Part shown: in pieces, positions 1 through 58,672 of the stretch
How positions within the stretch are numbered: position 1 is the first letter of the stretch
Layout of the letters: every line of letters starts with the position of its first letter
Made by a program: the position numbers and the translations under genes
Notes under the pieces: model-generated
The model's database searches: none
The model's input: only the letters and a program-made list of their open reading frames with translations
What the model was told of the DNA's origin: nothing
IMG/VR virus record: IMGVR_UViG_3300020172_006270
Location: 159,269-223,268 of that record
Strand: one strand, 5' to 3'
Length of the DNA: 64,000 bases

Positions 1-352
1 TAGTCATCGCATTGCGAGTTGTTTGAGTAGCACCTGTAGCACTGAGCTTGCCCCCACCAGCAACTTGTTGGATAATTGTAGTCAATAGAGTAGCGGTTTT
101 GTTCTTATTCAGATTGTGTCTATCTAGCACCTGGAAAAGACGGTGAACTTGACGTTGAATGTCGTTGGTGATGCCTTCCATTTCCGCTGCTGCTTCTGGC
201 GGTGGATCACGGTCTGTCCCCTGACCAGGATTTTGTCCCTCTGGACTTGGACCTGTAGGTGGCATTTGATTAGCAGCCGGGTTCATCTGGTTTTGAGCAG
301 GCGGCATCCCGTCTTCTTCTTTTAAGCAAACAAAATCATGAAAACTTTTCAT
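1..352 (-). CDS. Hypothetical protein with CTS-like N-terminus (partial, runs off window start)
   Basis: Not in ORF track; manual translation MKSFHDFVCLKEEDGMPPAQNQ..., ATG overlaps the TAA of the upstream ORF (TAATG), open to base 1. Confidence 0.8.
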   Translation of the reverse strand, partial: MKSFHDFVCLKEEDGMPPAQNQMNPAANQMPPTGPSPEGQNPGQGTDRDPPPEAAAEMEGITNDIQRQVHRLFQVLDRHNLNKNKTATLLTTIIQQVAGGGKLSATGATQTTRNAMT

Positions 353-732
353 TATCCCCTCGATGCGGCTGGAGTTTGTGGTTCATCTTGAGGCAACATC
401 TGTGGTGGTTGCTGCTGTTGTGGAGTCATGGGCGGTTGTCCGTGGCCCGTTTGAGCCGCTTGTGGGTCCATGCCACCAAAGAACGCTTCCAGCGTCGAGG
501 ACACGATTGCTTGGGCAAACTGATCTCGTACTTCAGGTGGAACATCCCTGAAGGATTTGATCTTTGGATTTCCTTCACTTAATCGAAGCACTATGGCTTC
601 TTGAAGTTTCCCCACCCTGGGTGCAATAAACGCTTTCATGTCAGGGCTTGTAGGGAACTTCATTGACTTGATGTGATCCCACTCAGCATTTTGAGTGTTC
701 TCTTTGATTCGCCAATCTTTAAGTGATTTCAT
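352..732 (-). CDS. Hypothetical protein, CTS-like N-terminus, Q/P-rich tail
   Basis: MKSLKDWRIKE start; translationally coupled to both neighbours. Confidence 0.75.
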   Translation of the reverse strand: MKSLKDWRIKENTQNAEWDHIKSMKFPTSPDMKAFIAPRVGKLQEAIVLRLSEGNPKIKSFRDVPPEVRDQFAQAIVSSTLEAFFGGMDPQAAQTGHGQPPMTPQQQQPPQMLPQDEPQTPAASRG

Positions 733-1070
733 TATTGCACCGGATTCATGACAATAGTATGTGGGTCAGGCTCGTCAGATTGCCCGGTCTTGAGCAACTT
801 GCCGTTATCTTTAGGGTCAGGCGAAGCATCGGCTTGCCTGACCTTATCGAGAACATGCTTTACCTTGTCATGCCAACCAGAAATCTTTGTGGTTGGAATA
901 TCAAGCAATTGTGAAAGACCTTCTGAGTTGTTGATGACCAATAGAAAATCATCCCAAAACTCATCACGAACGCCTATGCCAGTGCGTATAGCGGACATGG
1001 CCCTATCATCTTGGGGCGTCTTTTCTTTCTGAGCTTGGATATTTTCCCACAGTCGTTGAAACGAACTCAT
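732..1070 (-). CDS. Hypothetical protein, weak CTS-like N-terminus
   Basis: MSSFQRLWE; SD AGGTGG upstream; coupled to next ORF. Confidence 0.75.
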   Translation of the reverse strand: MSSFQRLWENIQAQKEKTPQDDRAMSAIRTGIGVRDEFWDDFLLVINNSEGLSQLLDIPTTKISGWHDKVKHVLDKVRQADASPDPKDNGKLLKTGQSDEPDPHTIVMNPVQ

Positions 1071-1103
1071 TTCCCACCCTATTGAATGACAAAGCTATGT
1101 AAA

Positions 1104-1641: not shown

Positions 1642-1646
1642 GCGGG

Positions 1647-1652: not shown

Positions 1653-1665
1653 GGGTTGGCGCAAC

Positions 1666-1699: not shown

Positions 1700-1725
1700 A
1701 GGGAAGAGGGGGCTTCAGTCGAAGG

Positions 1726-5339: not shown

Positions 5340-5577
5340 TCGTAATCCCTTGCCCTATCTCGTTGTTGGTATTGGACTTAGGGGCGGCGTGTACCACATG
5401 CCCGCATTTATTGCAGACAAATTCAAAAGGTCCGTAACCGAGCCTTGATCCTTCCCAAAACCATCCTAGACCGGGGTATTTCGGATGACACTGTTCACAC
5501 AACACGTTCATCGTTCGTTCTTCTTCGGGGATTGACTCGTCCATCCAAAGATAACAATCTTCTTGCCGCACGTCCAT
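5314..5577 (-). CDS. Small Zn-finger protein (start revised to 5577)
   Basis: CxxCH and CxxCGH pairs; TAGATA 4 nt before ATG 5577. Confidence 0.65.
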   Translation of the reverse strand: MDVRQEDCYLWMDESIPEEERTMNVLCEQCHPKYPGLGWFWEGSRLGYGPFEFVCNKCGHVVHAAPKSNTNNEIGQGITNENHQTSV

Positions 5578-5628
5578 ACTGTATCTACTCCCGCATAAAT
5601 AAGTTGTTCTTAATAGAGGGTAAAATTC

Positions 5629-5973: not shown

Positions 5974-6230
5974 CCCGCCATTCCGTCTCTAATGCCAACT
6001 ATTACTTTGTCATTTTTAACGGAATAGGCAATTTCGCACCAATCTGAATCCTTGGCAGGATTGTATTTGTGCTTCGCTCTAACCGCCTGGAGAGCCGCTT
6101 TTTCGTATTTTTGCACTATTGCGAGTGCCGCACGCAGTTTTTCAGATTCTTCTCTCGTAATCTCAATGGAGACGTTGGTTAATCCCCAAACTACTCCACT
6201 AGGACCACGTTCGACGCTTTCAAGTTTCAT
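5970..6230 (-). CDS. Hypothetical protein
   Basis: ATGA overlap with gdh stop. Confidence 0.65.
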   Translation of the reverse strand: MKLESVERGPSGVVWGLTNVSIEITREESEKLRAALAIVQKYEKAALQAVRAKHKYNPAKDSDWCEIAYSVKNDKVIVGIRDGMAG

Positions 6231-7492
6231 CTCTGGAAATATCCCTTGTTGCCCAAGCAGGCGTTCGCTGCATTGATTCGCTTCAAAGCTAAGACATATG
6301 CTGCTGTCCGAGCAGAAATATCGTGCTTCATATGCAAGGCGATTACTTTCTCGGTTGCATATACCATCATCTCTCGTAAATCATGATCGACCTCTGGCAA
6401 TGTGCGGCTGATCGCAGTTCGGTTTTGAAGCCATTCAAAATAGCTGACTACAACACCACCAGCGTTAGCCAGAATATCGGGAATCACTAACACTCCACGA
6501 TCATTGAGAATTGCATCAGCCTCATTTGTGGTAGGGCCGTTGGCCATTTCCAAGATCACCTTTGCTTTGATCTTGTCTGCATTGTTAATGGTGATGACGT
6601 TCTCAACAGCAGATGGAGCCAATACGTCAATATCGAGGGACCACAATTCTTCATTGGTGATCTTATCGCCGTCGCCCCATTCTTTGCCACCACTCTCATC
6701 GAGGGACTTGCGGCACGCCGATACATTGAGTCCGTGTTCATTATATGAACCACCAAACTCATTGGTCAGGGCCACCACCTTCAATCCAGAACGGAAGCAT
6801 TTCTCGGCCAACCAATATCCTACCTTTCCGAATCCTTGAATTGCAATTCGGATGTCTTCTGGGTTAGACGGGATATTCACTTTGCTGATACTGTTGTTGA
6901 GAACATTTTCCAGAACGTAATATCCACCATATCCGGTGGCAGAACTTCTGCCTTCAATGCCGCCCAGGGCAACTGGTTTTCCAGTGACAATATCCTTTGG
7001 GTGTCCACCTTTGATTCTTTTATATTCGGAGTACATCCACCCCATGATTCGTTCGTCGGTGTACAAGTCAGGCGCAGGCACATCGACATCAGGACCGATA
7101 AAGTCGATCATGGATGCGATATATGCTTTGCTGAGTCGTTCCAATTCACGGTGCGATAATTTTGTCGCATCAACGCAAATACCGCCTTTGGCACCACCAT
7201 ATGGCAATTTTAAGCACGCACATTTGAACGTCATCCACAGGGCAAGAGCCTCGCAGTGGTCAGCATCTACAGATGGATGGTAACGAATGCCGCCCTTTGC
7301 CGGGCCAAGAGTTGTGTCGTATTGGCATCTAAATGCCTGATACATTTTGAGAGTCCCGTCATCATGTCGCATTGGGATTGTGACATTCAGGGTCTTTTGT
7401 GGATATTGAAGTCGCTGCCAGCTTTCATCATCAATTTCAGCAAATTTATAGGCAGCATCAAGTTGTTTTTTGGCTTCTTCTAACATCGACAT
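6227..7492 (-). CDS. gdhA: Glutamate dehydrogenase (Glu/Leu/Phe/Val dehydrogenase family)
   Basis: GPAKGGIRYHP, LPYGGAKGG, DVPAPD, TGKP, QGFGKVG, EMANGP, PDILANAGGVVVSYFEW. Confidence 0.95.
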   Translation of the reverse strand: MSMLEEAKKQLDAAYKFAEIDDESWQRLQYPQKTLNVTIPMRHDDGTLKMYQAFRCQYDTTLGPAKGGIRYHPSVDADHCEALALWMTFKCACLKLPYGGAKGGICVDATKLSHRELERLSKAYIASMIDFIGPDVDVPAPDLYTDERIMGWMYSEYKRIKGGHPKDIVTGKPVALGGIEGRSSATGYGGYYVLENVLNNSISKVNIPSNPEDIRIAIQGFGKVGYWLAEKCFRSGLKVVALTNEFGGSYNEHGLNVSACRKSLDESGGKEWGDGDKITNEELWSLDIDVLAPSAVENVITINNADKIKAKVILEMANGPTTNEADAILNDRGVLVIPDILANAGGVVVSYFEWLQNRTAISRTLPEVDHDLREMMVYATEKVIALHMKHDISARTAAYVLALKRINAANACLGNKGYFQR

Positions 7493-8756: not shown

Positions 8757-10298
8757 ATGAGAACATTTACTGAAAGCCTACAAGTCACCACCAATCTCAG
8801 AATGGCCAAAGAATCATTCATTCTGATGTCCGAGCGTGGAGTTGACCCTAATGATTTTGTCGAGTGGTACACAACCGATGGAATCGGCATACAAGACCAG
8901 GGCTTGCTTGTAGAAGCATCCGAAGAATGGTTAGAAGGCCAAATCGCCAACTGGTTTAGAGACTATGCTGGTCAAAAGGGATTAGGCAAAGCTACCAATG
9001 CACTCGCCACAGGAATTGGTGGTGCTGCTGGTGCTGGCTTAGAAACGGCTAAAGGACTCGGTGGTGCCGCAGTTGATAATGCAACTGCTGCTGCCAATAG
9101 AGTTGGTGGGGCATTCAAGGCTGTAACAGGTTGGGGCAATAATCCCGCTCCTGCTTCTCCCGCAGGAGGCTCTGGCACTCCTGGTGGCAATCCCGGTGCT
9201 GCTCAACCACAAGCACAAGCACAAGCACAAGCACAAGCACAACCTCAAGCTCCTGAGCCTGCTTATGCACAACATGCCAAGAATGCGGCGACCGCAGTTG
9301 ACGCACTTTCTAAGCGTATGTCTAAGTCTAAATCGTTGATGGAAAAACTTGGCGGTCCATCTTTCCAAGCGGTAGTTGTTAATTTACTGAATATGCTCAA
9401 GAATCCATCTAATATGGTTCAAGCTGCTCCACAAGCAACTCCACAAGCACCAGCAAGTTCTAGTGCTGACACACCATCTTTTGAGTCAACTGGCTTCGGC
9501 AATTTCACTCGCAAGATTAGACTTCATAATGAAATCAAGACTGGTCTGCGAACTCTTCAACAACATAACATTGATCCTGTCAAGTTTGTTGATTGGTATA
9601 TCGAAGAAGGACAATACCTCAATGAAGGTATGTTTGATGGGGTAAAAGACTGGTTTGGTCGTCAATGGGCTAATGCTAAGGGTGCGTGGGGTCAATGGGG
9701 CAAGGCTGGTGACGAATATCAGGCCCAGAAAGATCAGGGTCGTGATAACGACGCTATTCAGCAAGCAATGCACGCCTTGGGCGAACTTGAAAAGGGAATG
9801 GGAGGCAGTCAGCCAGCAGAAGATTTTGCTGCTGTATTGAAGCAAGTTCAAGCAGGCTTGAATCAAGCATCACAGGCTCCGGCTGCTCCTGAATCACCAG
9901 CCGCCACTCCTGAAGCTGCTCCTGAAGCTGCTCCTGAAGCTGCTCCTGAATCACCAGCCGCCACTCCTGAAACACCTGCTCCATTTGATCCACTACAGTC
10001 ATACATGAAAGAATTGTTGAATGTCTCTAGTGCTGATCCTAAGACCATTCAATCCGAAGTACCAAAGATTATGGACTTTGCCAAGAAAGCAGGAGTCGAT
10101 CAAAACCAATTGTTGTCTCAACTGAAGGCACAGGGAATTGATCTCAAGAAATTGGGATTACCAGAACCAACTTACACTCCACCTTCAGAAGAAGAGTGGA
10201 TGAATGCAGTTCACGGTGGCGCAAACACACCGAGCTTTGAGAATAGAGTTCGTAGTGGAATGCCATTGTTCTTTGAGTATCTTAAACGGCGTGCTTAA
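8757..10298 (+). CDS. Large Ala/Pro/Gln-rich protein with internal duplication, putative internal head protein
   Basis: Repeated (V/I)DPxxFV(E/D)WY module; LVE/LNE/FE sites; QA and PEAA repeats. Confidence 0.7.
   Translation: MRTFTESLQVTTNLRMAKESFILMSERGVDPNDFVEWYTTDGIGIQDQGLLVEASEEWLEGQIANWFRDYAGQKGLGKATNALATGIGGAAGAGLETAKGLGGAAVDNATAAANRVGGAFKAVTGWGNNPAPASPAGGSGTPGGNPGAAQPQAQAQAQAQAQPQAPEPAYAQHAKNAATAVDALSKRMSKSKSLMEKLGGPSFQAVVVNLLNMLKNPSNMVQAAPQATPQAPASSSADTPSFESTGFGNFTRKIRLHNEIKTGLRTLQQHNIDPVKFVDWYIEEGQYLNEGMFDGVKDWFGRQWANAKGAWGQWGKAGDEYQAQKDQGRDNDAIQQAMHALGELEKGMGGSQPAEDFAAVLKQVQAGLNQASQAPAAPESPAATPEAAPEAAPEAAPESPAATPETPAPFDPLQSYMKELLNVSSADPKTIQSEVPKIMDFAKKAGVDQNQLLSQLKAQGIDLKKLGLPEPTYTPPSEEEWMNAVHGGANTPSFENRVRSGMPLFFEYLKRRA
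9209..9242 (+). repeat. (CAAGCA)n microsatellite encoding QAQAQA
   Basis: Tandem hexamer visible in sequence. Confidence 0.85.
9887..9972 (+). repeat. Direct repeats encoding PESPAAT / PEAA
   Basis: gaatcaccagccgccactcctgaa twice, flanking repeated gctgctcctgaa. Confidence 0.85.
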
Positions 10299-11541
10299 TG
10301 ATTTCGATGGCCTCGTCTACGTCGGCCATTGAGAATATCAAATGTGGTCTTAATCGAATTGACCGTTCTCCGCAAGGCAGGACGGTCATTCTTTTTAGTA
10401 GGTTATCTAAGACCGCATTGCGTGCTTCAGGCGTCTCTAAGTCAAACGCCAGCATCAATCCCTTGCCACGAACATTAGTGATGCGTGGAACCGTGAGAAG
10501 CTGCTTCAAGAAGTAGTCGCCTACTATGGCGACCCGATTCAGAATGTCGTCTTCCTTCATGATCTGAGCTATGTGCGTGAATCGGATCATGTCAATAATG
10601 TTGCCGCCCCACGTCGAGTTGATACGACTGGACTGCTTGAATACATTATCGGGAACTTCATCAATACGGGTGGTAGAAGCGAAACCACAGACCTGCGCTT
10701 TCTTCCCGAACGCTATCATATCTGGCCGCAGCCCGGCATGATGTTCGTAGGCCCATGTTGTCCCGGTCAAACCTACGCCGGTTTGAACTTCATCAAGTAT
10801 GAGCATAGCTTCATACTCAAAGGCCATTTTACGCAGGGCTGCAAAGTATTCGGAAGAAAAGTGGTTATCACCCCCTTCGCCTTGAATGGTTTCCAGAATA
10901 ATTGCGGCCACACGGTTTGTCTTGAGAGCGTCTTCTGCTTGTCGCAGCGAGAGTTCTTCGACCACCGTGGTTTCGCTTTCCACCAACGGGAAGTGTATCT
11001 TTGGATTCTTTATTCTGCTCCAATTGAATTTGGGGAACAAGGCAGTCTTATTTGCGAATGTATTGGTTAAAGAGAGTGTGTATCCGCTACGACCGTGGAA
11101 TGCTTGTTCCAGGTGTACGACATCTAGCGAATTAGCGTCGGCTTCGCTGAGGCCGAGTTTCTTCATCTTCCAATCAAATGCTGCTTTCAGGGCATTCTCT
11201 ACGCCCAGGGTGCCGCCTTCGACAAAGAAGAAATGATTGAAGTCTGGTGCAATACCTGCAAACGTATGGACGAACTCAGCCAATGGAACGCTGTAGTAGT
11301 CTGAGTTGGCAATTTTGTGGACAGCATACAGATTGATGCTTTCCATTTTTTCTTTTAGTTTGGGATGGTTCCATCCCAGGGGCATACTTGCGAATTGCGA
11401 GGAGCAATCAAGAAAAGGTTGTCCGGTTTTGGCGTCAACCAAGTGGGTGCCGAAACTTTTTTCAAAATCAATGACAATAGGCTCACCATCGCCGATGGTG
11501 TGTCTTTTCATGACATCATGTACTTGGTCCGGTCTAAACAT
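10282..11541 (-). CDS. lat: L-lysine 6-aminotransferase (class III PLP aminotransferase)
   Basis: VENALKAAFDWK, AFHGRSGYTLSLTNT, ETIQGEGGDNHF, DEVQTG, FGKK, RINSTWGG. Confidence 0.9.
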   Translation of the reverse strand: MFRPDQVHDVMKRHTIGDGEPIVIDFEKSFGTHLVDAKTGQPFLDCSSQFASMPLGWNHPKLKEKMESINLYAVHKIANSDYYSVPLAEFVHTFAGIAPDFNHFFFVEGGTLGVENALKAAFDWKMKKLGLSEADANSLDVVHLEQAFHGRSGYTLSLTNTFANKTALFPKFNWSRIKNPKIHFPLVESETTVVEELSLRQAEDALKTNRVAAIILETIQGEGGDNHFSSEYFAALRKMAFEYEAMLILDEVQTGVGLTGTTWAYEHHAGLRPDMIAFGKKAQVCGFASTTRIDEVPDNVFKQSSRINSTWGGNIIDMIRFTHIAQIMKEDDILNRVAIVGDYFLKQLLTVPRITNVRGKGLMLAFDLETPEARNAVLDNLLKRMTVLPCGERSIRLRPHLIFSMADVDEAIEIIKHAV

Positions 11542-11911
11542 TGAAGAACATCCTCGCCGTGGTCATCAGACAGAGTTGATGAATAAGCTGGTCTAGTCCG
11601 ACTACCACGAAAAATTTATGTACGTCCTGCTTTGCCCAAAAATACTTCGTGAATTGACTGGTGGTAATATCAGTCAGCCAATGTAAAACAAAGTTCACGC
11701 CGATGAACCAGAGGAGAGCTTCGCCGGTTACTTTATCGGCAAATGTAAGCCACGGGTTCAATAGGCCAACAAAGAGGACTAGACTGTATGTAGTGACGTG
11801 TAGGGTTAATGCCCAAGGGTTCTTGCTTTTGTTGTTTGCCATCCATCTGGTTTGGCAAACGAAATCCCCTAACCAATGGTTGAGAAACAAGACCCCTAGC
11901 ATTTCGTACAT
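11534..11911 (-). CDS. DUF3307-like membrane protein
   Basis: HWLGDFVCQT, H..TY, HWLTD, GLDQLIH. Confidence 0.8.
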   Translation of the reverse strand: MYEMLGVLFLNHWLGDFVCQTRWMANNKSKNPWALTLHVTTYSLVLFVGLLNPWLTFADKVTGEALLWFIGVNFVLHWLTDITTSQFTKYFWAKQDVHKFFVVVGLDQLIHQLCLMTTARMFFNV

Positions 11912-11924: not shown

Positions 11925-12221
11925 TTAAATCCATCCATCTTTGATCGCCACCTTGATCTCTTCCATTGTAACCTTTCGGCTCAAGGTTTCGGATACCGCC
12001 TCGATAAAATGTTCCTCAATGCTTCGCTGAATCTCTCGGCGATACATTGGTCCCATTTTCATGGCGTCCAAATATGAGTTCATGTCAATTTGCCAATCCA
12101 GAAGCTCACCGTCAATGAAGATGGCTTTTTCAATACCACCGCCTTTGGCTGGCCGCATCTTAACTTCAAATCGTTTTTTTCCCTCTGGAGGCGTCGGGAA
12201 TTGGAGTATTTCTTCGCTCAT
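11925..12221 (-). CDS. Hypothetical protein (start revised to 12221)
   Basis: MSEEILQF..., ACTCTATTAT 4 nt before ATG; avoids overlap with divergent gene. Confidence 0.65.
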   Translation of the reverse strand: MSEEILQFPTPPEGKKRFEVKMRPAKGGGIEKAIFIDGELLDWQIDMNSYLDAMKMGPMYRREIQRSIEEHFIEAVSETLSRKVTMEEIKVAIKDGWI

Positions 12222-12254
12222 GACAATAATAGAGTTCGACTGCGTAAATATTGT

Positions 12255-12791
12255 ATGCGTTTTCACAATTGGCTAGTTTTGCAGGAATCTAACCTACAAG
12301 ACCTCTATACAAGTACGGTTCAAGCCTTCCCCCGGACGACCAAAAGACAACATGCCACCGATTTAGTTCGGATCATCGAGTTGAATTGGACGCCCTTCTT
12401 GGGGGTCAAAACCCTATTCATAAAGGGTATTGCGCATAGCGAAGAAAGCGGAAAAGAATATTCCCCAATGGTATTGTTCAAAGGTGTGAATTATCACAAC
12501 GCCAAGGACAACCAGAATTGGATCGAGATTGTAGCGAATGATGGTCGTCACTACGTCTTTGAAAGACTCAGTAACGATAACGATGTGTTAGTTCGGTGTG
12601 ATTGTAATGATTTCAAATGGCGTTTCAACTACACAGATCACATAGATACATCGTTGTATGGGAGAGTCAGAAAGAAGTACGAAGCGAATGTGAATCCTGG
12701 CTCGGCGAATCCGCTCGAAATGCCGGGAATGTGCAAGCACTTAATCAAACTCGTGCAATCTCTCGATCACGCTGGAATCTTGGAGGATTAA
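12255..12791 (+). CDS. SWIM Zn-finger protein with CTS-like N-terminus (start revised to 12255)
   Basis: CDCNDF...MCKHL; MRFHNWLVLQE; TAAATA 4 nt before ATG. Confidence 0.75.
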   Translation: MRFHNWLVLQESNLQDLYTSTVQAFPRTTKRQHATDLVRIIELNWTPFLGVKTLFIKGIAHSEESGKEYSPMVLFKGVNYHNAKDNQNWIEIVANDGRHYVFERLSNDNDVLVRCDCNDFKWRFNYTDHIDTSLYGRVRKKYEANVNPGSANPLEMPGMCKHLIKLVQSLDHAGILED

Positions 12792-13513: not shown

Positions 13514-13852
13514 TTAGCTGCCGATCTTAACGACGGCCCAATTGACTACTGCACCGGAACCACCTGTTGCTGTGAAGCCCCACTGATCGGTGTCTGAAAT
13601 CGCTGCCAAAGCAGTCGATACATAAACGTGTGCGCTTGTGTTGGCCGACAGGATAACGACATAATCGCTAACTGCACCAACCAAAGCTGGAAATTCTACG
13701 ACGCCAGTTGTGCCGGTCAAAGTAATCTTACCAGCAGCAGAAACCTTCGGACCAATCAACTTGGCTACGCCAAGAGACATATGCTCCGAACCCTTCTGAA
13801 TGCCAGCTACACTTCCTGGACCGCTAACGCCTGTTACGCTTGTTGCTCCCAT
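13514..13852 (-). CDS. Small beta-rich putative virion protein, paralog of 25581..25943
   Basis: MGATSVTGVSGPG N-terminus; G/S/T/V-rich; SD AAGGAG. Confidence 0.7.
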   Translation of the reverse strand: MGATSVTGVSGPGSVAGIQKGSEHMSLGVAKLIGPKVSAAGKITLTGTTGVVEFPALVGAVSDYVVILSANTSAHVYVSTALAAISDTDQWGFTATGGSGAVVNWAVVKIGS

Positions 13853-17041: not shown

Positions 17042-17539
17042 ATGGGTCAGAAGTTTATTTGGTCTGCGGAATGGAGAGACGATAAGACATGGCAGCTTAT
17101 CGCACCGCCTGCTCCTGTACAAATTGGCACACGTCCACATTTGACCATAGAAGAAATAGCCGTGCAGCATGGCAATAATACTGCGTGGATACCCGGCAAG
17201 GCATCCTGGAATGAAACAAAGATCACCTATAACGACGTAGAAAATGAAGAAGGTGGTGCGTTGTTTATGCGATGGGTGTCTGAGCAATATCGTGCCTTAG
17301 ACACAACAGAAAGCCGTGGCTGGCAATCAGAACGAGCGACAGTTATTTTGAGGCTACATGGTGGAAATGGTGAAGTTTTAGAAGTGTGGTACTTGGAAGA
17401 TTCTTTTATCACCGCTCTGGATTTTGGCTGTCCAGGCTACACTAGCTCCTTAGATTACGAGCTAAATGTTGCTGTTAGATATTCCGATGTCAGCTATTCG
17501 ACACCTGATCCTAAAACATGGCTGAAGCCACTTACTTGA
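17042..17539 (+). CDS. T4 gp19-like tail tube family protein (orphan paralog)
   Basis: RPxLTIEE, PGKASW, ITYxD, NGEVLEVWxL, LDFG, VRY pattern of gp19 family. Confidence 0.7.
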   Translation: MGQKFIWSAEWRDDKTWQLIAPPAPVQIGTRPHLTIEEIAVQHGNNTAWIPGKASWNETKITYNDVENEEGGALFMRWVSEQYRALDTTESRGWQSERATVILRLHGGNGEVLEVWYLEDSFITALDFGCPGYTSSLDYELNVAVRYSDVSYSTPDPKTWLKPLT

Positions 17540-17732
17540 CGGGAACTGCTGTTGCACCACCTGCTCCTTTGCAAGCTCCACCTGGGCCGGGACCACCACC
17601 CATGCCACACAATTTTAGATCGTGTGGTTTTGGAGTTGTATCTTTTGGGCCGGGCTTAAACAAAGAGTCTTGAGCCTTCCCTTTGCTGATCCAACCGCCT
17701 TCGTTCAATGATAGCCAATGTTTGAAATCCAT
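17532..17732 (-). CDS. Small protein with CTS-like N-terminus
   Basis: MDFKHWLSLNE; TACATA 4 nt before ATG. Confidence 0.7.
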   Translation of the reverse strand: MDFKHWLSLNEGGWISKGKAQDSLFKPGPKDTTPKPHDLKLCGMGGGPGPGGACKGAGGATAVPVK

Positions 17733-17754
17733 GAAGTATGTACGCTCGGCGCAT

Positions 17755-18398: not shown

Positions 18399-18710
18399 TT
18401 ATCCGTCGAATTGAGAAACTTCCCAAGGATCGGTGATGCTTCTGTGGACTTTTGTTGGCTTTACAACCCCATAATCAACAAAAGCCTCATCAATTAGTTT
18501 CTTTCCATAACGTGTCAAAATGTCCTTGGTTGGAATGAACACATTTGGATCAAGGACAACTGGCGTTTGCGTGATGGGAATATATGGTGCGTAGAAATAT
18601 CCGCTGTCCATATAGGAACTTCCTTTGAATCCCATGAGATTTCCCCCGCCCGAAAAAAGAGGGTCTTTATAGGTTTTGAGTCGTATTTCTTTTGGTTCTC
18701 GGTCGATCAT
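18399..18710 (-). CDS. Stand-alone copy of major capsid protein C-terminal segment (mini-gp23)
   Basis: 45/62 aa identical by manual alignment to MCP segment YKDPLF...RYGKKLLRE. Confidence 0.85.
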   Translation of the reverse strand: MIDREPKEIRLKTYKDPLFSGGGNLMGFKGSSYMDSGYFYAPYIPITQTPVVLDPNVFIPTKDILTRYGKKLIDEAFVDYGVVKPTKVHRSITDPWEVSQFDG

Positions 18711-18762
18711 ATTTCATTATATTCACTTTCAAAGAATATGTACATCGGGAGATAAATAAGCT

Positions 18763-19494
18763 ATGAACTTTTCAGAATGGTTATCAACTAATGAAGCTCG
18801 CTGGCGAGGCCCCGTAGGTGGAGCCTTTGGCCGTGATTCTCGTCGTATGCAACAACAACAAAAGCCGGTGACACCTGTGGCAAAACCAGAAGAAGAATCG
18901 CCCAAGCCAGATTTAGGACATGCTCCCAACCCTGCTGAACGTACTCCACCGCCTCAAATGCGTATGGGCAATAGGTTCCAGAATATTGACCAGAGAGTTC
19001 AATATGGAAAGAGCATTGAAAAGCAAATATTTGATAGCTTGGTTCGATGTGGGATGAAGCTCCGTGAACCGTCCAGCCAAGAAGATATGTACGACAAGAT
19101 TGACGGCTGGTGGGAAACGCCGAGTGGTGAGAAGCCTATTCAGATCAAATATCGTGACACCGGAGATGATATTCTCTTCGAGGTAATGAAGGATTATCGA
19201 CGTGGCGTGCCAGGAAGAGACATGGTTGGTAAAGCTGAGTTTTATGCCGTGCTAACTCGTGCCGGAGGCAAAATCGTATTAGTGAGCGTTGCAGAAGCCA
19301 AAAAGCTCATAGAAGAGATGCGTACCAGAGCCGAAGATGAAGGGTTTGACCAGCGTGGCAACTTCCGCATGGGTGGTGCAATATTGCGAGTTCGACCTGA
19401 TCCACGATCACAACAAGATAAACTCATGGCGTATATTCCGGTTTCAATGCTCAAGCAAATCACGCCGCCATGTTCTGCCCAAGTAAAATTCTAA
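18763..19494 (+). CDS. Putative PD-(D/E)XK nuclease with CTS-like N-terminus
   Basis: E...DMYDKIDGW...IQIKYR; MNFSEWLSTNE; TAAATA 4 nt before ATG. Confidence 0.6.
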   Translation: MNFSEWLSTNEARWRGPVGGAFGRDSRRMQQQQKPVTPVAKPEEESPKPDLGHAPNPAERTPPPQMRMGNRFQNIDQRVQYGKSIEKQIFDSLVRCGMKLREPSSQEDMYDKIDGWWETPSGEKPIQIKYRDTGDDILFEVMKDYRRGVPGRDMVGKAEFYAVLTRAGGKIVLVSVAEAKKLIEEMRTRAEDEGFDQRGNFRMGGAILRVRPDPRSQQDKLMAYIPVSMLKQITPPCSAQVKF

Positions 19495-23568: not shown

Positions 23569-23811
23569 TCATTTCTTCTGCACCAACTTGGTGAACTCGC
23601 TGTCGGAAAGGTAGGTTTTCGGGTTGCGAAGAATCTTTTCCATCAGTTCTTTCCCCCGTGGGCTGTTGAGATGCTCCCAGATGAAACGTCGGGTGGATAT
23701 ATCGTACTGATCGAGTGCGGTTTTCAGAGCAGATACGAGGGTCGATATAGCCTGGACTTTATTGTTGCCCCGGTCTTTGCCTTCGTTGATGTATTCCTTG
23801 AATGATTCCAT
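23569..23811 (-). CDS. Small protein with CTS-like N-terminus
   Basis: MESFKEYINE; TAGATA 4 nt before ATG. Confidence 0.75.
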   Translation of the reverse strand: MESFKEYINEGKDRGNNKVQAISTLVSALKTALDQYDISTRRFIWEHLNSPRGKELMEKILRNPKTYLSDSEFTKLVQKK

Positions 23812-23898
23812 GCTTTATCTAGGGTATTGGCTAAAGTTATTGTCGGCACTGCCGATATAACTTGTAACTTCCAACTACTTTCAACAACTAGGTGAACT

Positions 23899-24352: not shown

Positions 24353-24631
24353 TCAGCACCATACGACTTGGTTTTCTCTAATGAAGTAATGCGTCCTACA
24401 GGGCAATTGAAAGTTGCCGATAGAAGGACTTAGGGAAACCTTCCCATTGTCGTTTGTAAGCGTCCAACCGTTGTGTGGTGGGTTTGGATCAATAGGGGTG
24501 CATACTTGGTGTCCACAGCCACAGCAGCACTTGTGAATGGCAGTAGTGTACTCCAGAGAGATGTAGAGTACGCCTTCTTTCATGTCTTCTGGGATGTAGT
24601 GAACGAATTCGGGCGTTATGTTTGTTAGCAT
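24353..24631 (-). CDS. DUF6527-like Cys/His protein (start revised to 24631)
   Basis: GVLYIS, HKCCCGCG, W.L, SLSPSIGN, CRTHYFI; TAGATA 4 nt before ATG. Confidence 0.75.
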   Translation of the reverse strand: MLTNITPEFVHYIPEDMKEGVLYISLEYTTAIHKCCCGCGHQVCTPIDPNPPHNGWTLTNDNGKVSLSPSIGNFQLPCRTHYFIRENQVVWC

Positions 24632-24705
24632 GGTGTATCTATTGTCTCGCCACAATTTGTTTTGATGGCTTGCTGGCTAAATACATTAGCCACAAAGGAG
24701 ATGAT

Positions 24706-25164
24706 ATGGCACCACAAGAAAATGAACAGAATCCAATGTCTCTTGAAAACCTACCTGCTTACTTGAAGTCTCTTAAAGAGAAAGGAAGCACAGGTGATTG
24801 TCTTGTTGATATGGGAAGGATTGAGGAACCAAAGAAAATGCCTAATAAATGGTTATGGACTCAGCGAATCTTGTTTACGCTTGCTATCTGCATGATCGCT
24901 GGCACAACCGGGTTAATTACTTATGATTTAGCGTCACGACAAGAGCTTACTGTCGTGGTGAATCTCAACAAAGACGCCAACCCAGCCCAGGCAATTCCAG
25001 AAATGGTTTCTGACAGTGGCGGCACTGTTATAGCAGTCAAACAACATGACAGCACTTCAGCTTATGAAGTCAAGGTGTCTACCCGCAAGAGCCGGAAAGC
25101 GCTTTTGGAATGGCTCAACAAGAACAAGAACGTCAAAGAAGTGAAGCTAAAAGAAGACAAATGA
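24706..25164 (+). CDS. Single-pass membrane protein
   Basis: SD AAGGAG; central TM helix. Confidence 0.7.
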   Translation: MAPQENEQNPMSLENLPAYLKSLKEKGSTGDCLVDMGRIEEPKKMPNKWLWTQRILFTLAICMIAGTTGLITYDLASRQELTVVVNLNKDANPAQAIPEMVSDSGGTVIAVKQHDSTSAYEVKVSTRKSRKALLEWLNKNKNVKEVKLKEDK

Positions 25165-25577
25165 TAATTGAATTCAAACAATGGTTGGAGAATAGCTTTC
25201 CAGAAGCAGCCTGGGGTCCATCTTCTTTAGTTGGAAGCAATGGAACTTCGCTCAGAGTCAATGGTGGATACATCGACATTCAACCTGTTACTAAATGGTC
25301 GCCCAGAAGCCAATCTGTAATCGACTTTTACGTTGATGAAGCCAAAAGGAATCAAGGAATTGGAGATTGGCTAGTCAAACAAGCTAAATTGAAATTCAAA
25401 GATTTGGGAGCGCAAGTATCATCAATTCCTTCGATGAAAGTTTTCTTCAATAATGGATTTAGAAATCCAAATATGGCAAATCAATCATTTGAAGATCATG
25501 TGAAAGAATTTCAAAACAATGGCTCATCACTCTTCCTAGCCATGAATGACGACCAAGGAAAGCCTTACTTTAATTGA
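25161..25577 (+). CDS. GNAT acetyltransferase with CTS-like N-terminus
   Basis: FYVDEAKRNQGIG (AcCoA motif A), FFNNGF; MIIEFKQWLE. Confidence 0.75.
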   Translation: MIIEFKQWLENSFPEAAWGPSSLVGSNGTSLRVNGGYIDIQPVTKWSPRSQSVIDFYVDEAKRNQGIGDWLVKQAKLKFKDLGAQVSSIPSMKVFFNNGFRNPNMANQSFEDHVKEFQNNGSSLFLAMNDDQGKPYFN

Positions 25578-25580: not shown

Positions 25581-25943
25581 TTATTCAACAGGAATAGCAG
25601 CTTGACCTTGGCTTATGACAGCGTAGGAAATTGATTTGTTGATTCCACTAACGCCACCCATGAAAGTCAGGTTGACTAAATAGCCATCACTTTCAGCACC
25701 ACCTACACTTACAGCAAACTGATCGACTCCCAGAGCAGTACAGATATAGGAATAACTATAGAATCCTCCTGGCAATGGATCGGGGAATTCTAGTGTGTAG
25801 CCACCCCCGCCGTTTAGCGTAGCTATGCCAGCCACGATGATTCGTGGTCCTGCTAATGGCACATATGTATCACGATTATTGTGTGGACCTTTACTTGTTG
25901 CTGCGCCTGGTCCTGATACGCCTGTTACTGATGATGCTCCCAT
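25581..25943 (-). CDS. Small beta-rich putative capsid decoration/fibre protein (start revised to 25943)
   Basis: MGASSVTGVSGPG; directly downstream of MCP; TACATA 4 nt before ATG. Confidence 0.65.
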   Translation of the reverse strand: MGASSVTGVSGPGAATSKGPHNNRDTYVPLAGPRIIVAGIATLNGGGGYTLEFPDPLPGGFYSYSYICTALGVDQFAVSVGGAESDGYLVNLTFMGGVSGINKSISYAVISQGQAAIPVE

Positions 25944-25965
25944 ACTGTATGTATTACAGCGCAAC

Positions 25966-46869: not shown

Positions 46870-48741
46870 ATGGATCAAGCCGTATTTTTCAAGAGCAAAC
46901 GTGACTCTGTTTGGCGGGGCAAACACAAAACCCTGGAAGAATTCTATAAGAGTGGTGGGAAGATACTTAAACGAGGGGAGGGCAAAAAGAGTCGTCTCCA
47001 ATATGATCCCGACTATTACACTCTCGACAAGTATGAACTTGAAATTGATCCCGATGAGCCGCTGGAAAACTTCGATACTTACGATTCGGCCCGTCGTCAA
47101 AAAGAGATCATCAAGTGCTGCAACAGCTTCGCTTATTTCTGCCACAAATATGTGAAGATTCTTCACCCGATGGATGGTTTGATTCCTTTCGTATTATACA
47201 ACTATCAGCGAAAGGTTATCCAAGAATACGAAAACCACCGATTTAACATCATCAGTAAGTTTCGTCAAGGGGGACTGACGACAGTAACTTTGCTGTGGGG
47301 CATGTGGCGCTGCATGTTCCAACTCGACCAACAGATCATGATCTTGGGTCGAACTGACCGTGACGCCACAGATATTGGCATGATGGTGGATCGTTCCATT
47401 GAGAACTTCCCAGATTGGTTGAAGCCAATAAAAGATGGTAAGTGGAATGACCACATGAAGATGTTCACGGACACCGGGTCGGCCTTAAAATTTCACTCTC
47501 CTGAAGCTGCTCGTGGTAAGTCCGTTACATTCTTGATTGTGGACGAAGCTGCGTTCATTGATGACATGGACAAGCACTGGAAAGCTATGTGGCCTATCCT
47601 TTCGACGGGTGGTGGTTGCACCCTTGTATCCACGGTTAATGGTCTGGGCAACTGGTATGAACAAACCTACCACGAAGCACAAGAAAAGCAAAACCGATTC
47701 AATATCATCGACTTGGATTATTGGGAACATCCCGACTACAACGACGATGAATGGGTTAAAGAACAAAAGGCACAACTCGGCGAGAAAGGCTTCTTGCAGG
47801 AAGTGTTGCGTGAGTTCCTTGGCTCCGGTGACACTTACTTCTCTGCTAAGGTCATCACACAACTCACAGAGCAAACCAGAAACAATTACCCTAGCCGCAA
47901 GTTATTCCCGAAATGGGTCAACAAGGCAGGCCGTATTGCTGTGTTGGAAAGTGAAGACCACAACAAGGGTGCTATGTGGGTCTGGAAAGAACCAATTGAT
48001 GGCCATGAATATATCATTGGCGCTGACGCCTCTGAAGGCCAAGGCAACAATAACGACAATTGCTGTTTTCAGGTAATTGATACAGCAACTTTGGAACAAG
48101 TGGCCGAGTTTTACTCCAATATCATTGTGCCTCACGAATTCGCTCAGGTGCTTAATGAAGTGGGCATTTATTACAACAATGCTCTGATTGTTGTCGAAAA
48201 CATGGGTCCAGGCGGGGCTGTTCTAAGCAACCTGCAATTCACCTTGTTTTACGAGAACCTTTATTACGAAAGCCTTAAATCGGCCAACGTAAAACCGGGC
48301 ATCAAAATTGGTCAAGTAAACCGATCTCTATATTTGGAATCTCTCCAAAATCGGCTATTGAACCAAACTGTGCGTATTAACAGTATGCGATTTGTTATGG
48401 AACTTCAGACTTTTGAGTACAACCCTGTCACTCGCAAGGCTGAAGCCCAAAAAGGCAAGCACGACGACGCTATTATGTCTATGTGTATGGCCCTTTATGT
48501 TCGTGATTCCATGTTGCGAGACATACCTATGGGGGCAGAGATTCCGAAAGAAGTAACGGCCACGCTAAAAGCTCAGGTATATGAAGAAATCAAACGTGAA
48601 TTGATGGAAGGAAGACCAGAAGATTTCCTTATGGATGATGAAATAGACCTTTTAGCGCCCGACAAAGATACTGTCATGCCCGGTGTTATTTTCAACATTG
48701 AGCGTCGGAACGATAGACTGCTTAAAGAATTTGGGTGGTAA
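46870..48741 (+). CDS. gp17: Terminase large subunit, T4 gp17-like
   Basis: LYNYQ, KFRQGGLTT, IVDEAAF, VSTVNG, GADASEG, VENMGPG, HDDAIM. Confidence 0.95.
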   Translation: MDQAVFFKSKRDSVWRGKHKTLEEFYKSGGKILKRGEGKKSRLQYDPDYYTLDKYELEIDPDEPLENFDTYDSARRQKEIIKCCNSFAYFCHKYVKILHPMDGLIPFVLYNYQRKVIQEYENHRFNIISKFRQGGLTTVTLLWGMWRCMFQLDQQIMILGRTDRDATDIGMMVDRSIENFPDWLKPIKDGKWNDHMKMFTDTGSALKFHSPEAARGKSVTFLIVDEAAFIDDMDKHWKAMWPILSTGGGCTLVSTVNGLGNWYEQTYHEAQEKQNRFNIIDLDYWEHPDYNDDEWVKEQKAQLGEKGFLQEVLREFLGSGDTYFSAKVITQLTEQTRNNYPSRKLFPKWVNKAGRIAVLESEDHNKGAMWVWKEPIDGHEYIIGADASEGQGNNNDNCCFQVIDTATLEQVAEFYSNIIVPHEFAQVLNEVGIYYNNALIVVENMGPGGAVLSNLQFTLFYENLYYESLKSANVKPGIKIGQVNRSLYLESLQNRLLNQTVRINSMRFVMELQTFEYNPVTRKAEAQKGKHDDAIMSMCMALYVRDSMLRDIPMGAEIPKEVTATLKAQVYEEIKRELMEGRPEDFLMDDEIDLLAPDKDTVMPGVIFNIERRNDRLLKEFGW

Positions 48742-49708: not shown

Positions 49709-50043
49709 AAACAAACACAAACGAGACAAAAGCGGCTTTGCAGAAAGCATTAGCGCAAGTACCGCAAGACCATGCTTTGTCAGAAGTACGTTATCACATA
49801 CGGGCCGCTCTAGGAAAGCTGGAGACTGTTGAGAAGAAACGGGATCGTCGTGAGGTTAACTCGGAACGTCGTGAATTGGCACGGGGCCAAGGCAATGCGT
49901 ATTCGTATGATCCATTCCGGGCAATTCAGGCTATTGACGAAGAAATCGCCAAAGAAAAAGCCAAGATTGAAAATATTCAACGCCGCCGTACACAAGATGA
50001 CGAGAAAGATGACGGCGATGAGCTTCAAACAGTTCTTGGTTAA
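49705..50043 (+). CDS. Small coiled-coil protein
   Basis: Overlaps upstream stop by 4 nt; charged helical composition. Confidence 0.7.
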   Translation: MKTNTNETKAALQKALAQVPQDHALSEVRYHIRAALGKLETVEKKRDRREVNSERRELARGQGNAYSYDPFRAIQAIDEEIAKEKAKIENIQRRRTQDDEKDDGDELQTVLG

Positions 50044-50575
50044 TGAAGGACGTAGAAACAAATACGACTACTCTTCATTATTGGTCGAACCGCCAGAAGA
50101 AATTGCAGACAATGTAATTTCTTGGGGGTGGGATCATGTACCTAATGAATCCGTGTTTCTTGATCCTAAAGACCCCAGCTTTGGTCGAGAAGATGACCCT
50201 CACATTACTTTAATCTATGGCATTCACACAGACATCTTAAAAGAAGTGTCTGATCTGTTTGTTGACGAGAAAGAGTTTGAGTGTAAGTTGGGCAAGATTG
50301 ATATGTTTACGAAAAGCGATAAATTCGATGTGCTAATCGTAAGCGTGGAATGCGAAGAGTTACACAGGCTAAATCGTAAGATGCGAAGAAATTTAGAAGC
50401 CACTGAAAGCTATCCTGTTTATGTGCCTCACGTTACAATTTGCTACCTGAAAAAAGGTCAAGGCAAACAATACATTGGCAATGACGTTTTTGTAGATGAA
50501 AAGTTTACGATCAACAAGATTTTCTTTTCTTCAAAGACTGGCGAAAAAACTCCAATAAAGTTAGGTGCAAAATGA
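50018..50575 (+). CDS. 2H phosphoesterase, Acb1/T4 gp57B-like (start revised to 50018)
   Basis: Two HxT motifs PHITLIYG and YVPHVTICY; MSFKQFLVNE. Confidence 0.8.
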   Translation: MSFKQFLVNEGRRNKYDYSSLLVEPPEEIADNVISWGWDHVPNESVFLDPKDPSFGREDDPHITLIYGIHTDILKEVSDLFVDEKEFECKLGKIDMFTKSDKFDVLIVSVECEELHRLNRKMRRNLEATESYPVYVPHVTICYLKKGQGKQYIGNDVFVDEKFTINKIFFSSKTGEKTPIKLGAK

Positions 50576-56372: not shown

Positions 56373-56767
56373 TTTTTGGACTTCAGATTGAAGCTGCCAA
56401 TGTAACGACTACCATCAAAGGTTCCCTTGAATACGCCAGGGGATTCTTTGCTCATTTCGCCCTTCCATTCATAATCAGCACCGTCAATTTTGGCGGTGCC
56501 TGTTAGTTTATCGGGAGGACCACTGAACTTCACTTCGTAGTCGAATTTAACGCCCATCCAGATTCCATAGAAGCGACCTTTCCATTTGTCGCCTCCCAGG
56601 TCTGTAACTTCGGCAGTCATAATGCCGTCGAGTTTTCTATTGGTCGTAATCCACTCCCCTTCATAAACGAACTGAGCCGCTTCATTAGCGGCTACAGTCG
56701 GATGGATTGTGGATGTCGTTGTTGCCAATACTGTCATTAGCAACAAAGCTGCAAATGCACTTTTCAT
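56369..56767 (-). CDS. Secreted beta-barrel-like protein
   Basis: Signal peptide; G/W/F-rich strands. Confidence 0.75.
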   Translation of the reverse strand: MKSAFAALLLMTVLATTTSTIHPTVAANEAAQFVYEGEWITTNRKLDGIMTAEVTDLGGDKWKGRFYGIWMGVKFDYEVKFSGPPDKLTGTAKIDGADYEWKGEMSKESPGVFKGTFDGSRYIGSFNLKSKN

Positions 56768-56770
56768 CTA

Positions 56771-58672
56771 TCACCTTTTTTGAAGTTGTTCTTTGAAATA
56801 TTGCGTTCTCTCTGTGAACGAAAGCATTTCAATCTTCTTTTGTTCTACTAAAGGCTGTGGCACGCCTTTACGTTCATGAAGACGCTGTTTGTAAAAGTTC
56901 TTCACATCTGTTGCATTCCACTCTATTTCCATATTGGCAAGTTCGTGAACTCCCAACTCGCTTTCGAGTTCAGCAAGGTCTGCTCGGTCTTTCATATTCT
57001 TCAAATGCAATAGCAATTGACGTTTTGTATCTTCGTCCGACAACGCTTTAATGCGAACCCTCAAATCATCTTTGATTTGTCTGACAGACTTTTCTTTTGG
57101 TTCTTCTTTCGGCGTCGGATTTGGAATGGCCTCGGCACCATCCATGCCCGCAACTCTGGTCTTTGGATCAGGCGGTGCATCTGTAGGAGTGTCGTCGCCC
57201 TTGTGCATAGGCTCGCTCAATCCAGAGCCGTCTCCAGTGAACTTTTTCACTTCAGGGACTTCATCGCCAATACTTCCAACACGGTCCCTCAAAGAAGGCT
57301 TGGCTGGCTCAGGGGTTGGCATTGTAGGGGCTGGATCAGGCATAGGCGCAGTCTTTGGCACTTCAGTCTCATCGCCGCCCATTGCTGCATCACGAGCCGC
57401 ATCAACGTCCGAAGGGGCCGTTGAACGAGGCATCTTTCTACGAGCCTCTTCAGTCGTTGCTTTTGCTTTTTCTACTCTGGACTGAAAGTCCATTGCATTT
57501 TTGATTGGATCGCCATCTTGTTCCCAACGACCCAGACGGTGCAAGAAGTCAAACCAGTGTGAACCAACTTTCTTGTTGCCGCACTTTTTGCTGTCTGGCA
57601 ACTTGCCTTCTTTTTGAGCGGCAAGAATGTTTCTTCGTGGATCGCCAATACGCATAATCCAAGGCATCTTGAAAATACCGTGGTCGTTTAAGCAGCCATC
57701 AACCTTGGTTCCAGAACCATGTGATGCTCCACCACCATAGATGTCCCATTTGGCTTTCTCATCAGGATTAAGTTCATCCCAACGCTTACCACTGGACGGT
57801 GGCGTAAACAATGCTCCCTTTTCAGAAGCAGCAGACGCAGGACTAGCACTTGGGCCAGCGGGACTTGGAGAAGCACTTGCTTTGGCCTCAAGACCATTTT
57901 TGACACTAATGAACTCATCTTCAGCAATTTTTCTAATTGATGCTTTTTTGCTTTTAAGCCTGTCGATTAAATCTTGTGCTTTTTTTGCATCCAATTTTCC
58001 AGTTTTGCCCCAATCGGCGATTATGCCGATGACTTGATCCATGCCTTTATCCATCTTGGAATCAGGCTCCTCTTCAACAGGATTTGGAGATACAGCAGGC
58101 TCAGATACAGCAGGCACTTCAGGTTCTTCTTTTGTTCCCATTGAAGCAGCGGCAGACATAGGAGAACTGTCTTCTGCACCGCCAATAATAGACATGAGCT
58201 TTTGCTTGAGTTCTTGAGCTTTGGTGTCGATCATGCCTACCAGACGTAGGTTCTCAGCACCAGCAGGAACATCTTCGTTGAGTTGTTCTTCTAGTGATTC
58301 GCAGATGTCTCGAAGAGACTTATAATCGGCCAAAGAGAGATTGTTGGGATTGAAAGATTCCTGAGTAGAACCCAGGTCGTCGCCGAGCTTGTTTTGCCAG
58401 AAATATGGGTTGGTTTGGTTGTAACGACCGTGCCACATATTGGACATAGTGTTCTTAAAGCGGTCCCATAGACCCCGACGTTGCGCAAGGGGCGTCATCG
58501 GGTTCATAAGGGTCCGTTTCAGATCAGAAACCCAAGCATCAACGATTTGATTGACTTGTTTTTGGATATTTGCAGCCTTCTCGTGTTTTAGCACGTCTTC
58601 AGGCTGGACTCCAGTTTCAACGTCAGGTGCGGCTTCTGTAAGCCTATTGCGATATTCTTTGAATCCCAGCAT
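56771..58672 (-). CDS. Large Pro/Ala-rich protein with CTS-like N-terminus, putative internal head protein
   Basis: MLGFKEYRNRLTE; internal LNE/LVE sites; TATATA box and SD AAGGAG. Confidence 0.7.
   Translation of the reverse strand: MLGFKEYRNRLTEAAPDVETGVQPEDVLKHEKAANIQKQVNQIVDAWVSDLKRTLMNPMTPLAQRRGLWDRFKNTMSNMWHGRYNQTNPYFWQNKLGDDLGSTQESFNPNNLSLADYKSLRDICESLEEQLNEDVPAGAENLRLVGMIDTKAQELKQKLMSIIGGAEDSSPMSAAASMGTKEEPEVPAVSEPAVSPNPVEEEPDSKMDKGMDQVIGIIADWGKTGKLDAKKAQDLIDRLKSKKASIRKIAEDEFISVKNGLEAKASASPSPAGPSASPASAASEKGALFTPPSSGKRWDELNPDEKAKWDIYGGGASHGSGTKVDGCLNDHGIFKMPWIMRIGDPRRNILAAQKEGKLPDSKKCGNKKVGSHWFDFLHRLGRWEQDGDPIKNAMDFQSRVEKAKATTEEARRKMPRSTAPSDVDAARDAAMGGDETEVPKTAPMPDPAPTMPTPEPAKPSLRDRVGSIGDEVPEVKKFTGDGSGLSEPMHKGDDTPTDAPPDPKTRVAGMDGAEAIPNPTPKEEPKEKSVRQIKDDLRVRIKALSDEDTKRQLLLHLKNMKDRADLAELESELGVHELANMEIEWNATDVKNFYKQRLHERKGVPQPLVEQKKIEMLSFTERTQYFKEQLQKR

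Follow-up and report, generated by a model that had tools for sequence, protein, structure and literature searches.

The last 64 kb of the 223,268-bp contig IMGVR_UViG_3300020172_006270, hereafter called the window, belong to an uncultivated huge phage that is related to T4. Here, we analysed a short N-terminal tag with which 15 open reading frames (ORFs) of this window begin. The shared motif turned out to be real (robust in 11 of these ORFs, marginal in 4), and sequence comparison makes it likely (probability roughly 0.7) that the tag is a capsid targeting sequence (CTS) of the T4 type. Such a mechanism is known from T4; what appears to be new is its large expansion, with a 2H phosphoesterase among the predicted cargo.

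The 15 N-termini had been named in an earlier note made from the sequence alone (here called the original prediction), and all of them translate exactly as quoted there at the start coordinates it gave. Its consensus as written, M-x(1-4)-F-x-x-[WFY]-[LVI]-x(0-4)-E, fits 10 of the 15 and misses 732-, 1070-, 1641-, 31016- and 58672- (ORFs are designated by start position and strand). They are listed below with lengths in amino acids (aa), isoelectric points (pI) where relevant and the bit scores of a held-out profile hidden Markov model (HMM), which was built from related contigs only, leaving aside that of the window and those nearly identical to it.

2–352 (−): tagged ORF, MKSFHDFVCLKE; 17.2 bits; 3' end beyond the left edge of the window
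352–732 (−): marginal tag MKSLKDWRIKE, 126 aa; Leu replaces the first aromatic residue; 2.3 bits, not above background
732–1070 (−): marginal tag MSSFQRLWE, 112 aa; 0.1 bits
1381–1641 (−): tagged small protein MSLSGFKEWL, 86 aa; 10.6 bits; TAAATA 5 nucleotides (nt) before ATG, no Shine-Dalgarno (SD) sequence
12255–12791 (+): tagged protein MRFHNWLVLQE, 178 aa; 13.6 bits; TAAATA-N4-ATG upstream
17532–17732 (−): tagged small basic protein MDFKHWLSLNE, 66 aa, body pI 9.6; 7.6 bits; TACATA-N4-ATG
18763–19494 (+): tagged protein MNFSEWLSTNE, 243 aa; 11.2 bits; TAAATA-N4-ATG; no Pfam family
23569–23811 (−): tagged small basic protein MESFKEYINE, 80 aa; 11.8 bits; TAGATA-N4-ATG
25161–25577 (+): tagged protein MIIEFKQWLE, 138 aa; 9.0 bits; weak GNAT-like match below the cut-off
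29112–31016 (−): atypical marginal tag MKRKLISFDAFKKIEE, 634 aa; aromatic pair at residues 8 and 11, then I-E-E; not recognised by the tag HMM
31186–31587 (+): best tag, MKTFQDYVSLKE, 133 aa; 23.2 bits
37122–37358 (+): tagged small basic protein MIGFTNWLNRRDE, 78 aa; 8.0 bits
48746–49708 (+): tagged protein MSFMKYLE, 320 aa; 12.7 bits; body matches no recognised family
50018–50575 (+): tagged 2H phosphoesterase (LigT/Acb1-like) MSFKQFLVNE, 185 aa; assigned by Pfam, motifs and structure model
56771–58672 (−): marginal tag MLGFKEYRNRLTE, 633 aa; Arg at the aliphatic position; 2.4 bits; no family

Gene calling yielded 87 genes in the window; the starts at 12255, 48746 and 50018 were moved to those of the original prediction and 25161 was added, resulting in 88 genes. 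The adjusted starts 12255, 25161 and 50018 are backed by orthologs or by a start element described below; 48746 is not among them. The generic core [FWY]xx[FWY][LIVM], starting at residues 2–7, was found in 12 of the 88 window proteins, whereas internal positions predict 1.03 (binomial P = 6e-10), which makes it about 12 times commoner at gene starts than this expectation. With the unadjusted gene call, 8 of 87 proteins carry it. One of the 12, the primase 53965+, was rejected as a false positive: it fits this loose pattern, but the conservation of its N-terminus belongs to that of the body.

With megablast, the head module had no nucleotide-level relative among phage GenBank records. By protein, the nearest record is LR756511.1, an uncultured phage of 595 kb that has a capsid protein with 79.8% identity and is syntenic with the window at positions 494–552 kb. 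In addition, the IMG/VR scan with the window protease yielded 206 relatives, the window's own contig included. Applied unchanged to LR756511.1, the consensus of the original prediction matched 25 of 1,084 gene starts versus 9 of 3,592 internal Met residues (Fisher P = 6e-10); it also matched 22 of 20,966 other ATGs, several of which resemble true starts missed by the gene caller. Across 80 related contigs, the motif was present on 118 of 1,067 genes. The held-out HMM assigned 7.6–23.2 bits to 11 of the 15 ORFs (352-, 1641-, 12255+, 17732-, 18763+, 23811-, 25161+, 31186+, 37122+, 48746+ and 50018+), with 3.4 bits as the maximum among the other 73 proteins of the window. We graded 732-, 1070-, 31016- and 58672- as marginal because they scored only 0.1–2.4 bits. 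The comparison of ORF starts with internal positions, which the original prediction had proposed as its own test, shows enrichment in the window, in LR756511.1 and in the related contigs.

How closely does this tag resemble the T4 CTS? The CTS that the internal proteins IPI, IPII and IPIII of T4 carry was reportedly described by Mullaney & Black in 1996. It is reviewed in PMC9026906 and PMC3012670: the first 10 residues suffice, with residues 4 and 7 mainly responsible for targeting and residues 8 and 10 for processing (PMC9026906). In the T4 genome (NC_000866), ipII and ipIII begin with MKTYQEFIAE and ipI begins with MKTFKEFTSTTTPVSTITE. The logo of 114 distinct clade tags reads M-K-T-F-x-(E/D)-(W/Y/F)-(L/V/I)-x-L-(K/R)-E. 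The first aromatic residue stands at residue 4 in 68 of them (60%), the second follows three residues later and precedes an aliphatic one, so most of the tags carry aromatics at the positions 4 and 7 on which T4-type targeting depends. Glu occurs within 9 residues in 105 of the 114 tags, the first one 1, 2 or 4 residues past the aliphatic position, and some tags (MRSYAEYLAE, MKTFVEYLAE, MKSFDEFLTE) nearly copy the T4 CTS. We then trained an HMM on 112 tags from the clade alone and used it to search the 1,992 T4 ORFs that begin with ATG and comprise 30 aa or more, with all six frames included. It placed gp61.1 (MKTFKEFIKE) at rank 1 and the validated CTS proteins ipII, ipIII and ipI at ranks 2, 3 and 4.

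The likeness extends beyond single residues. As in T4 IPI, IPII and IPIII, an M-K-T start, aromatics at residues 4 and 7, an aliphatic residue 8 and a terminal Glu are combined with unrelated, fast-evolving bodies that have only the tag in common, in a phage that encodes a gp21-family protease and gp20- and gp23-type head genes. HMM ranks, conserved residues and protease all agree with the original prediction, which had equated the tag with the T4 CTS. Unlike the T4 CTS, the clade tags fall into two length classes (Glu 1–2 or 4 residues past the aliphatic position) and commonly have Trp as second aromatic; unlike the T4 ip genes, the tagged genes include a 2H phosphoesterase, and many of them are preceded by the sequence TAnATA-N4-ATG. 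As a side observation, T4 gene 61.1 (18966–19130, −; 54 aa, annotated as hypothetical) is identical to ipI in its first 22 nt, and gp61.1 is, judged by its sequence, a possible fourth CTS-bearing T4 protein.

Among the tagged bodies, BLASTP gave no match below E 0.2, in line with the claim that they are unrelated. The tags have no DNA identity in common either, and their conserved positions use all synonymous codons (5 codons for W/Y/F, 14 for the aliphatic position, both GAA and GAG for Glu), with a mild excess of TTT and AAA. Because codons are diverse and DNA identity is absent, nucleotide-level causes such as recombination handles or translation signals were ruled out. In tagged genes that have orthologs, no part is better conserved than the tag. 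The 20 orthologs of 31186+ have a mean column identity of 28%, and all of them keep M1, F4 and Y7, while E12 is conserved in at least 90%; the family of the 2H enzyme keeps the tag down to about 41% identity. The LR756511 ortholog of 12255+ is likewise tagged (MNFSGWLNE), relatives of 23811- begin with MKTFGEYLTE, MKSFDEFLTE or MKSFNEYLAE, the start of 25161+ is backed by an ortholog beginning with MIQFKQWLE, and the LR756511 ortholog of the marginal 1070- begins with MTFLEAWE. In the family of 37122+, (N/S)(F/Y)GG comes after the Glu of the tag. Judged by codons and orthologs, the tag is conserved as protein and not as DNA. The genes behind it are modestly enriched for those without a homolog in the syntenic LR756511 (12 of 15 tagged versus 36 of 73 untagged genes, P = 0.045), and in this they resemble the T-even internal proteins, which are hypervariable (PMC3012670).

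The window contains a T4-type head module consisting of genes for the major capsid protein (MCP), a protein in scaffold position, an S77 protease, a portal and a large terminase:

26028–27464 (−): gp23-type MCP; PF07068, E 2e-87
27509–28405 (−): gene in scaffold (gp22) position, placed by the synteny portal...protease, this gene, MCP
28405–29088 (−): gp21-family (S77) prohead protease; PF03420 Peptidase_S77, E 5e-26; phrog_207
32835–35378 (−): gp20-type portal, intein-bearing, 847 aa; PF07230, E 7e-76, and PF14890, E 5e-12
46870–48741 (+): T4-type large terminase, from head-module annotation

The protease, for which the coordinates of the original prediction were correct, aligns with T4 gp21 at 31% identity and keeps the GEL(D/N)HP and SSRG blocks. 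In the product of 27509–28405, we counted 12 (L/I)xE sites versus 6.4 expected, i.e. about twice as many. An alignment with T4 gp23 revealed that the MCP is extended at its N-terminus by about 50 residues, in which LNE, LLE (twice) and MNE occur.

Following the T4 model, we suggest that the tag, with 9–13 residues, a predicted helical conformation and the consensus M-K-T-F-x-(E/D)-(W/Y/F)-(L/V/I)-x(0-3)-E, would dock its protein on the prohead scaffolding core during head assembly, where the product of 27509–28405 is the presumed docking partner. The gp21-family protease (28405–29088), presumably the tag-processing enzyme, would then cleave after the Glu of the tag, and the mature protein would be kept in the head together with the DNA and leave with it at infection. 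The clade may have placed this tag on many unrelated, mostly clade-specific proteins, including the 2H phosphoesterase and small basic proteins. All of these steps, from docking and cleavage to retention in the virion and injection, are only inferred, and so is any role as effector.

Known head cargo of other phages allows a comparison. The giant phages SPN3US, phiKZ and 201phi2-1 have many head-internal proteins, a large capsid and a gp21-homologous protease, as proposed here, with the difference that several of their propeptides comprise 79 to about 130 residues with no common decapeptide reported (PMC5694885, PMC7411985), while the clade tag is T4-like with its 9–13 residues. T4 Alt, an ADP-ribosyltransferase of 682 aa, is a large enzyme with a short N-terminal propeptide that enters a T4-type head and thus a precedent for enzymes and 600-aa proteins as head cargo; its N-terminus MELITELFDE, unlike the clade tags, does not have the motif with aromatics at positions 4 and 7. 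None of the tagged window proteins was recognised as an ADP-ribosyltransferase.

Several observations weigh against a T4-type CTS that delivers effectors. Two positions ahead of the first Glu, only 46 of 105 tags have L or I (82 have a hydrophobic residue), and tags ending in W-L-E place Trp there, unlike the (L/I)xE rule of T4. The scaffold-position product has no detectable sequence similarity to T4 gp22, and the four marginal N-termini score no better in the held-out HMM than those of untagged proteins. Moreover, distant phages of the T4 superfamily encode an S77-type protease and have head regions without clear tags, which indicates that the tag does not simply travel with the protease: no clear tags were detected in about 41 kb around the capsid genes of XacN1, Flavobacterium phage immuto, Microcystis phage Mel-JY01 and LR756508, and none of 43 coding sequences is tagged in the head region of Atu_ph07, a relative for which 131 virion proteins have been reported. 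Finally, most tagged bodies have no recognisable function, and for them the term effector is a guess.

The cargo itself deserves a closer look in this respect. From sequence and structure model, 50018+ is confirmed as a 2H phosphoesterase, as the original prediction had proposed. It matches PF13563 (E 1.2e-9) and PF23474 Acb1 (E 1.5e-8; score 34.9 versus a cut-off of 27), both beyond the respective cut-off, and the motifs H62-x-T64 and H138-x-T140 are invariant in 24 homologs. The AlphaFold model has an overall predicted local distance difference test score (pLDDT) of 88, with more than 90 for the body and less than 50 for residues 1–12, and contains a predicted helix at residues 3–12 followed by a short linker. 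Foldseek retrieved LigT-like enzymes, viral cGAMP phosphodiesterases and Acb1 (7t26), the LigT-like enzymes ranking above Acb1. With phage Acb1 and other 2H phosphoesterases (T4 gene 57B; PDB 7t26), it shares the 2H fold and both HxT motifs and differs from them by the tag and short linker, about 15–20 residues, ahead of the fold. In T4, gene 57B/Acb1 (11953–12411, −) adjoins ipI (11592–11879); Acb1 begins with MMEFKDFST, compared to MKTFKEFTST in ipI, with an aromatic spacing as in the CTS, and a family alignment aligns this N-terminal stretch with the tag of the window enzyme.

Other cargo labels fared worse. The GNAT proposed at 25161+ is a sub-threshold hint only (PF13508, 21.5 bits versus a cut-off of 27), the SWIM domain proposed at 12255+ found neither a Pfam match up to E 5 nor a SWIM-like signature (regular expression with 5–25 residues from CxC to CxH), and the nuclease label had no Pfam support up to E 5. 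Searches of the family-less bodies with Pfam, PHROGs, PDB sequences and the ESM Atlas returned nothing usable.

It is conceivable, though unlikely, that the tag does load the head and that most cargo consists of structural or DNA-condensing internal or core proteins instead of injected effectors, acting as counter-ions or scaffold helpers and perhaps being degraded after assembly. The small, low-complexity, basic proteins 17732-, 23811- and 37122+ (body pI 9.2–9.9) would suit such a role, and T4 offers a precedent in gp67, gp68 and gp22, core proteins that are destroyed by gp21 (PMC5694885). Two tagged genes also belong to the conserved head module and not to the variable cargo: 31186+ (133 aa) is conserved in the clade between the 634-aa gene and the portal gene, and 31016- (634 aa), directly upstream of the protease, has 78 homologs in related loci with a near-invariant N-terminus and is, by this conservation, a core head-module protein. 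The picture does not fit the 2H phosphoesterase, however, which has intact catalytic motifs and no obvious structural role, and essential structural parts would not usually lack a homolog in the syntenic relative, as 12 of 15 tagged genes do. IPI*, moreover, is an example of T4 internal proteins that are both packaged and active after injection (PMC3012670). Independent of this question, 29112–31016 (−) encodes a very basic, R/K/S-rich central stretch and two TWP(D/N)(M/L)KNPYVP...YKMK repeats near the C-terminus, and matches no family.

We consider it still less probable that the tag is an interaction or fate signal outside the capsid, e.g. for a phage or host hub, a chaperone or a protease adaptor, with a merely convergent likeness to the T4 CTS. 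Short amphipathic helices with two aromatics are a common kind of linear motif, and both the tagless head regions of distant S77-protease phages and the scaffold-position protein without gp22 similarity would be compatible with this explanation. It would leave unexplained, however, why a clade profile picks all three validated T4 CTS proteins among 1,992 ORF starts, why the likeness covers the Met-Lys-Thr start, the residue spacing and the terminal Glu, and why conserved genes inside the head module are among the tagged ones.

A T4-type CTS thus remains our preferred explanation of the tag, and a second feature was found directly upstream of it. TAnATA-N4-ATG occurs 8 times in the window versus 1.3 times expected (0 of 100 shuffles reach 8). 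All eight matches are predicted gene starts, four of them of tagged genes, and one further tagged gene has the variant with N5:

12245–12257 (+): TAnATA-N4-ATG by pattern match, tagged gene 12255+
17730–17742 (−): the same, tagged gene 17732-
18753–18765 (+): the same, tagged gene 18763+
23809–23821 (−): the same, tagged gene 23811-
5575–5587 (−): the same, untagged gene 5577-
24629–24641 (−): the same, untagged gene 24631-
25941–25953 (−): the same, untagged gene 25943-
61439–61451 (−): the same, untagged gene 61441-
1639–1652 (−): TAnATA with N5, tagged gene 1641-

When a TAnATA ending 2–9 nt upstream of ATG was counted, the element was associated with the tag in the window (5 of 15 tagged versus 4 of 73 untagged genes, P = 0.006), in LR756511 (16 of 26 versus 61 of 1,058, P = 3e-13) and in the IMG/VR loci (30 of 100 versus 29 of 941, P = 3e-17). 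The genes with TAnATA 4 nt before ATG have no SD sequence. A TAnATA-like T4 late promoter, TATAAATA, lies 25–30 nt upstream of the T4 genes 22, 24, alt and soc; the arrangement TAnATA-N4-ATG was not found at the T4 ip genes. The element 4 nt before ATG looks like a T4-late-type promoter, and its position so close to the start codon would give leaderless mRNAs. Upstream of 1641(-), 17732(-) and 25943(-), (T/A)TGCGC(C/T), TAnATA and ATG come, in this order, after a GC-rich hairpin that has a T-run, an arrangement that has the look of a compact cassette of terminator, promoter and start.

That the first codons are instead an mRNA-level signal, e.g. for the translation of leaderless transcripts, is highly improbable: TAnATA 4 nt before ATG without SD sequence in 30%–60% of tagged genes, suggestive of leaderless mRNAs, and the mild excess of TTT and AAA would fit, but the conserved positions are amino-acid classes written in many codons (W/Y/F 5, aliphatic 14), some tagged genes (352-, 37122+) are preceded by a normal SD site, and the untagged genes 5577-, 24631-, 25943- and 61441- have the same TAnATA-N4-ATG.

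How many genes are tagged in a complete genome of this kind? In LR756511.1, the held-out HMM detected 34 ATG starts with at least 7 bits, 26 of them at called gene starts, which suggests roughly 30–40 tagged genes spread over the whole 595 kb. T4 has three known CTS proteins (plus gp61.1 as sequence candidate), and with 11–15 cases in 64 kb of the window and about 30–40 in this relative, the number is indeed far larger than in T4, as had been claimed. Given the distant head regions without tags, the expansion appears to be specific to this clade; the tag itself may either go back to an ancestor shared with T4 or have arisen by convergence. In literature searches on the CTS and the T4 decapeptide and in a comparative review of jumbo phages, we found no account of mass CTS tagging in huge phages.

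Taking tag and start element together, we tentatively, and at slightly less than even odds, propose a ‘cargo regulon’, in which dozens of accessory genes would combine a late-type TAnATA, leaderless mRNAs and a universal head-loading peptide so that the virion is pre-armed. That the tag is associated with a promoter-like element right next to the start codon points to a class of genes under its own regulation. In such a regulon, a large, fast-evolving set of proteins, including a phosphodiesterase of the cyclic-nucleotide type, would act before any phage gene is expressed, and the injected proteome of uncultivated megaphages could be read from their sequence. If the tag works as in T4, a profile search would already list the head-carried and maybe injected proteins of uncultivated huge phages and yield a shortlist of candidate anti-defence or takeover factors of the first minute, mostly without known family. 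The T4 CTS would then not be peculiar to T-even phages but belong to a scalable loading system with tens of cargos for capsids of 500–600 kb, and the clade would provide a natural library of working tag variants for T4-based protein delivery.

Some further features of the window were noted. The gene 352- heads a run of four small tagged genes (2–1641). In the portal (32835–35378), the intein splicing domain PF14890 covers residues 113–326, and the LR756511 ortholog, with 857 aa, probably contains an intein as well. A 103-aa ORF at 18399–18710 (−) is 67% identical to MCP residues 411–477 and is a stray duplicate of the C-terminal part of the gp23-type gene. Two auxiliary metabolic genes were found: 6227–7492 (−) encodes a glutamate/leucine-type dehydrogenase (PF00208, PF02812) with no ortholog in LR756511, and 10282–11541 (−) encodes a class-III aminotransferase (PF00202) with an ortholog there. 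Finally, the small paralogs 13514–13852 (−) and 25581–25943 (−) both begin with MGA(T/S)SVTGVSGPG; the latter has the start element TACATA-N4-ATG, and for the former a homolog in LR756511 is known.

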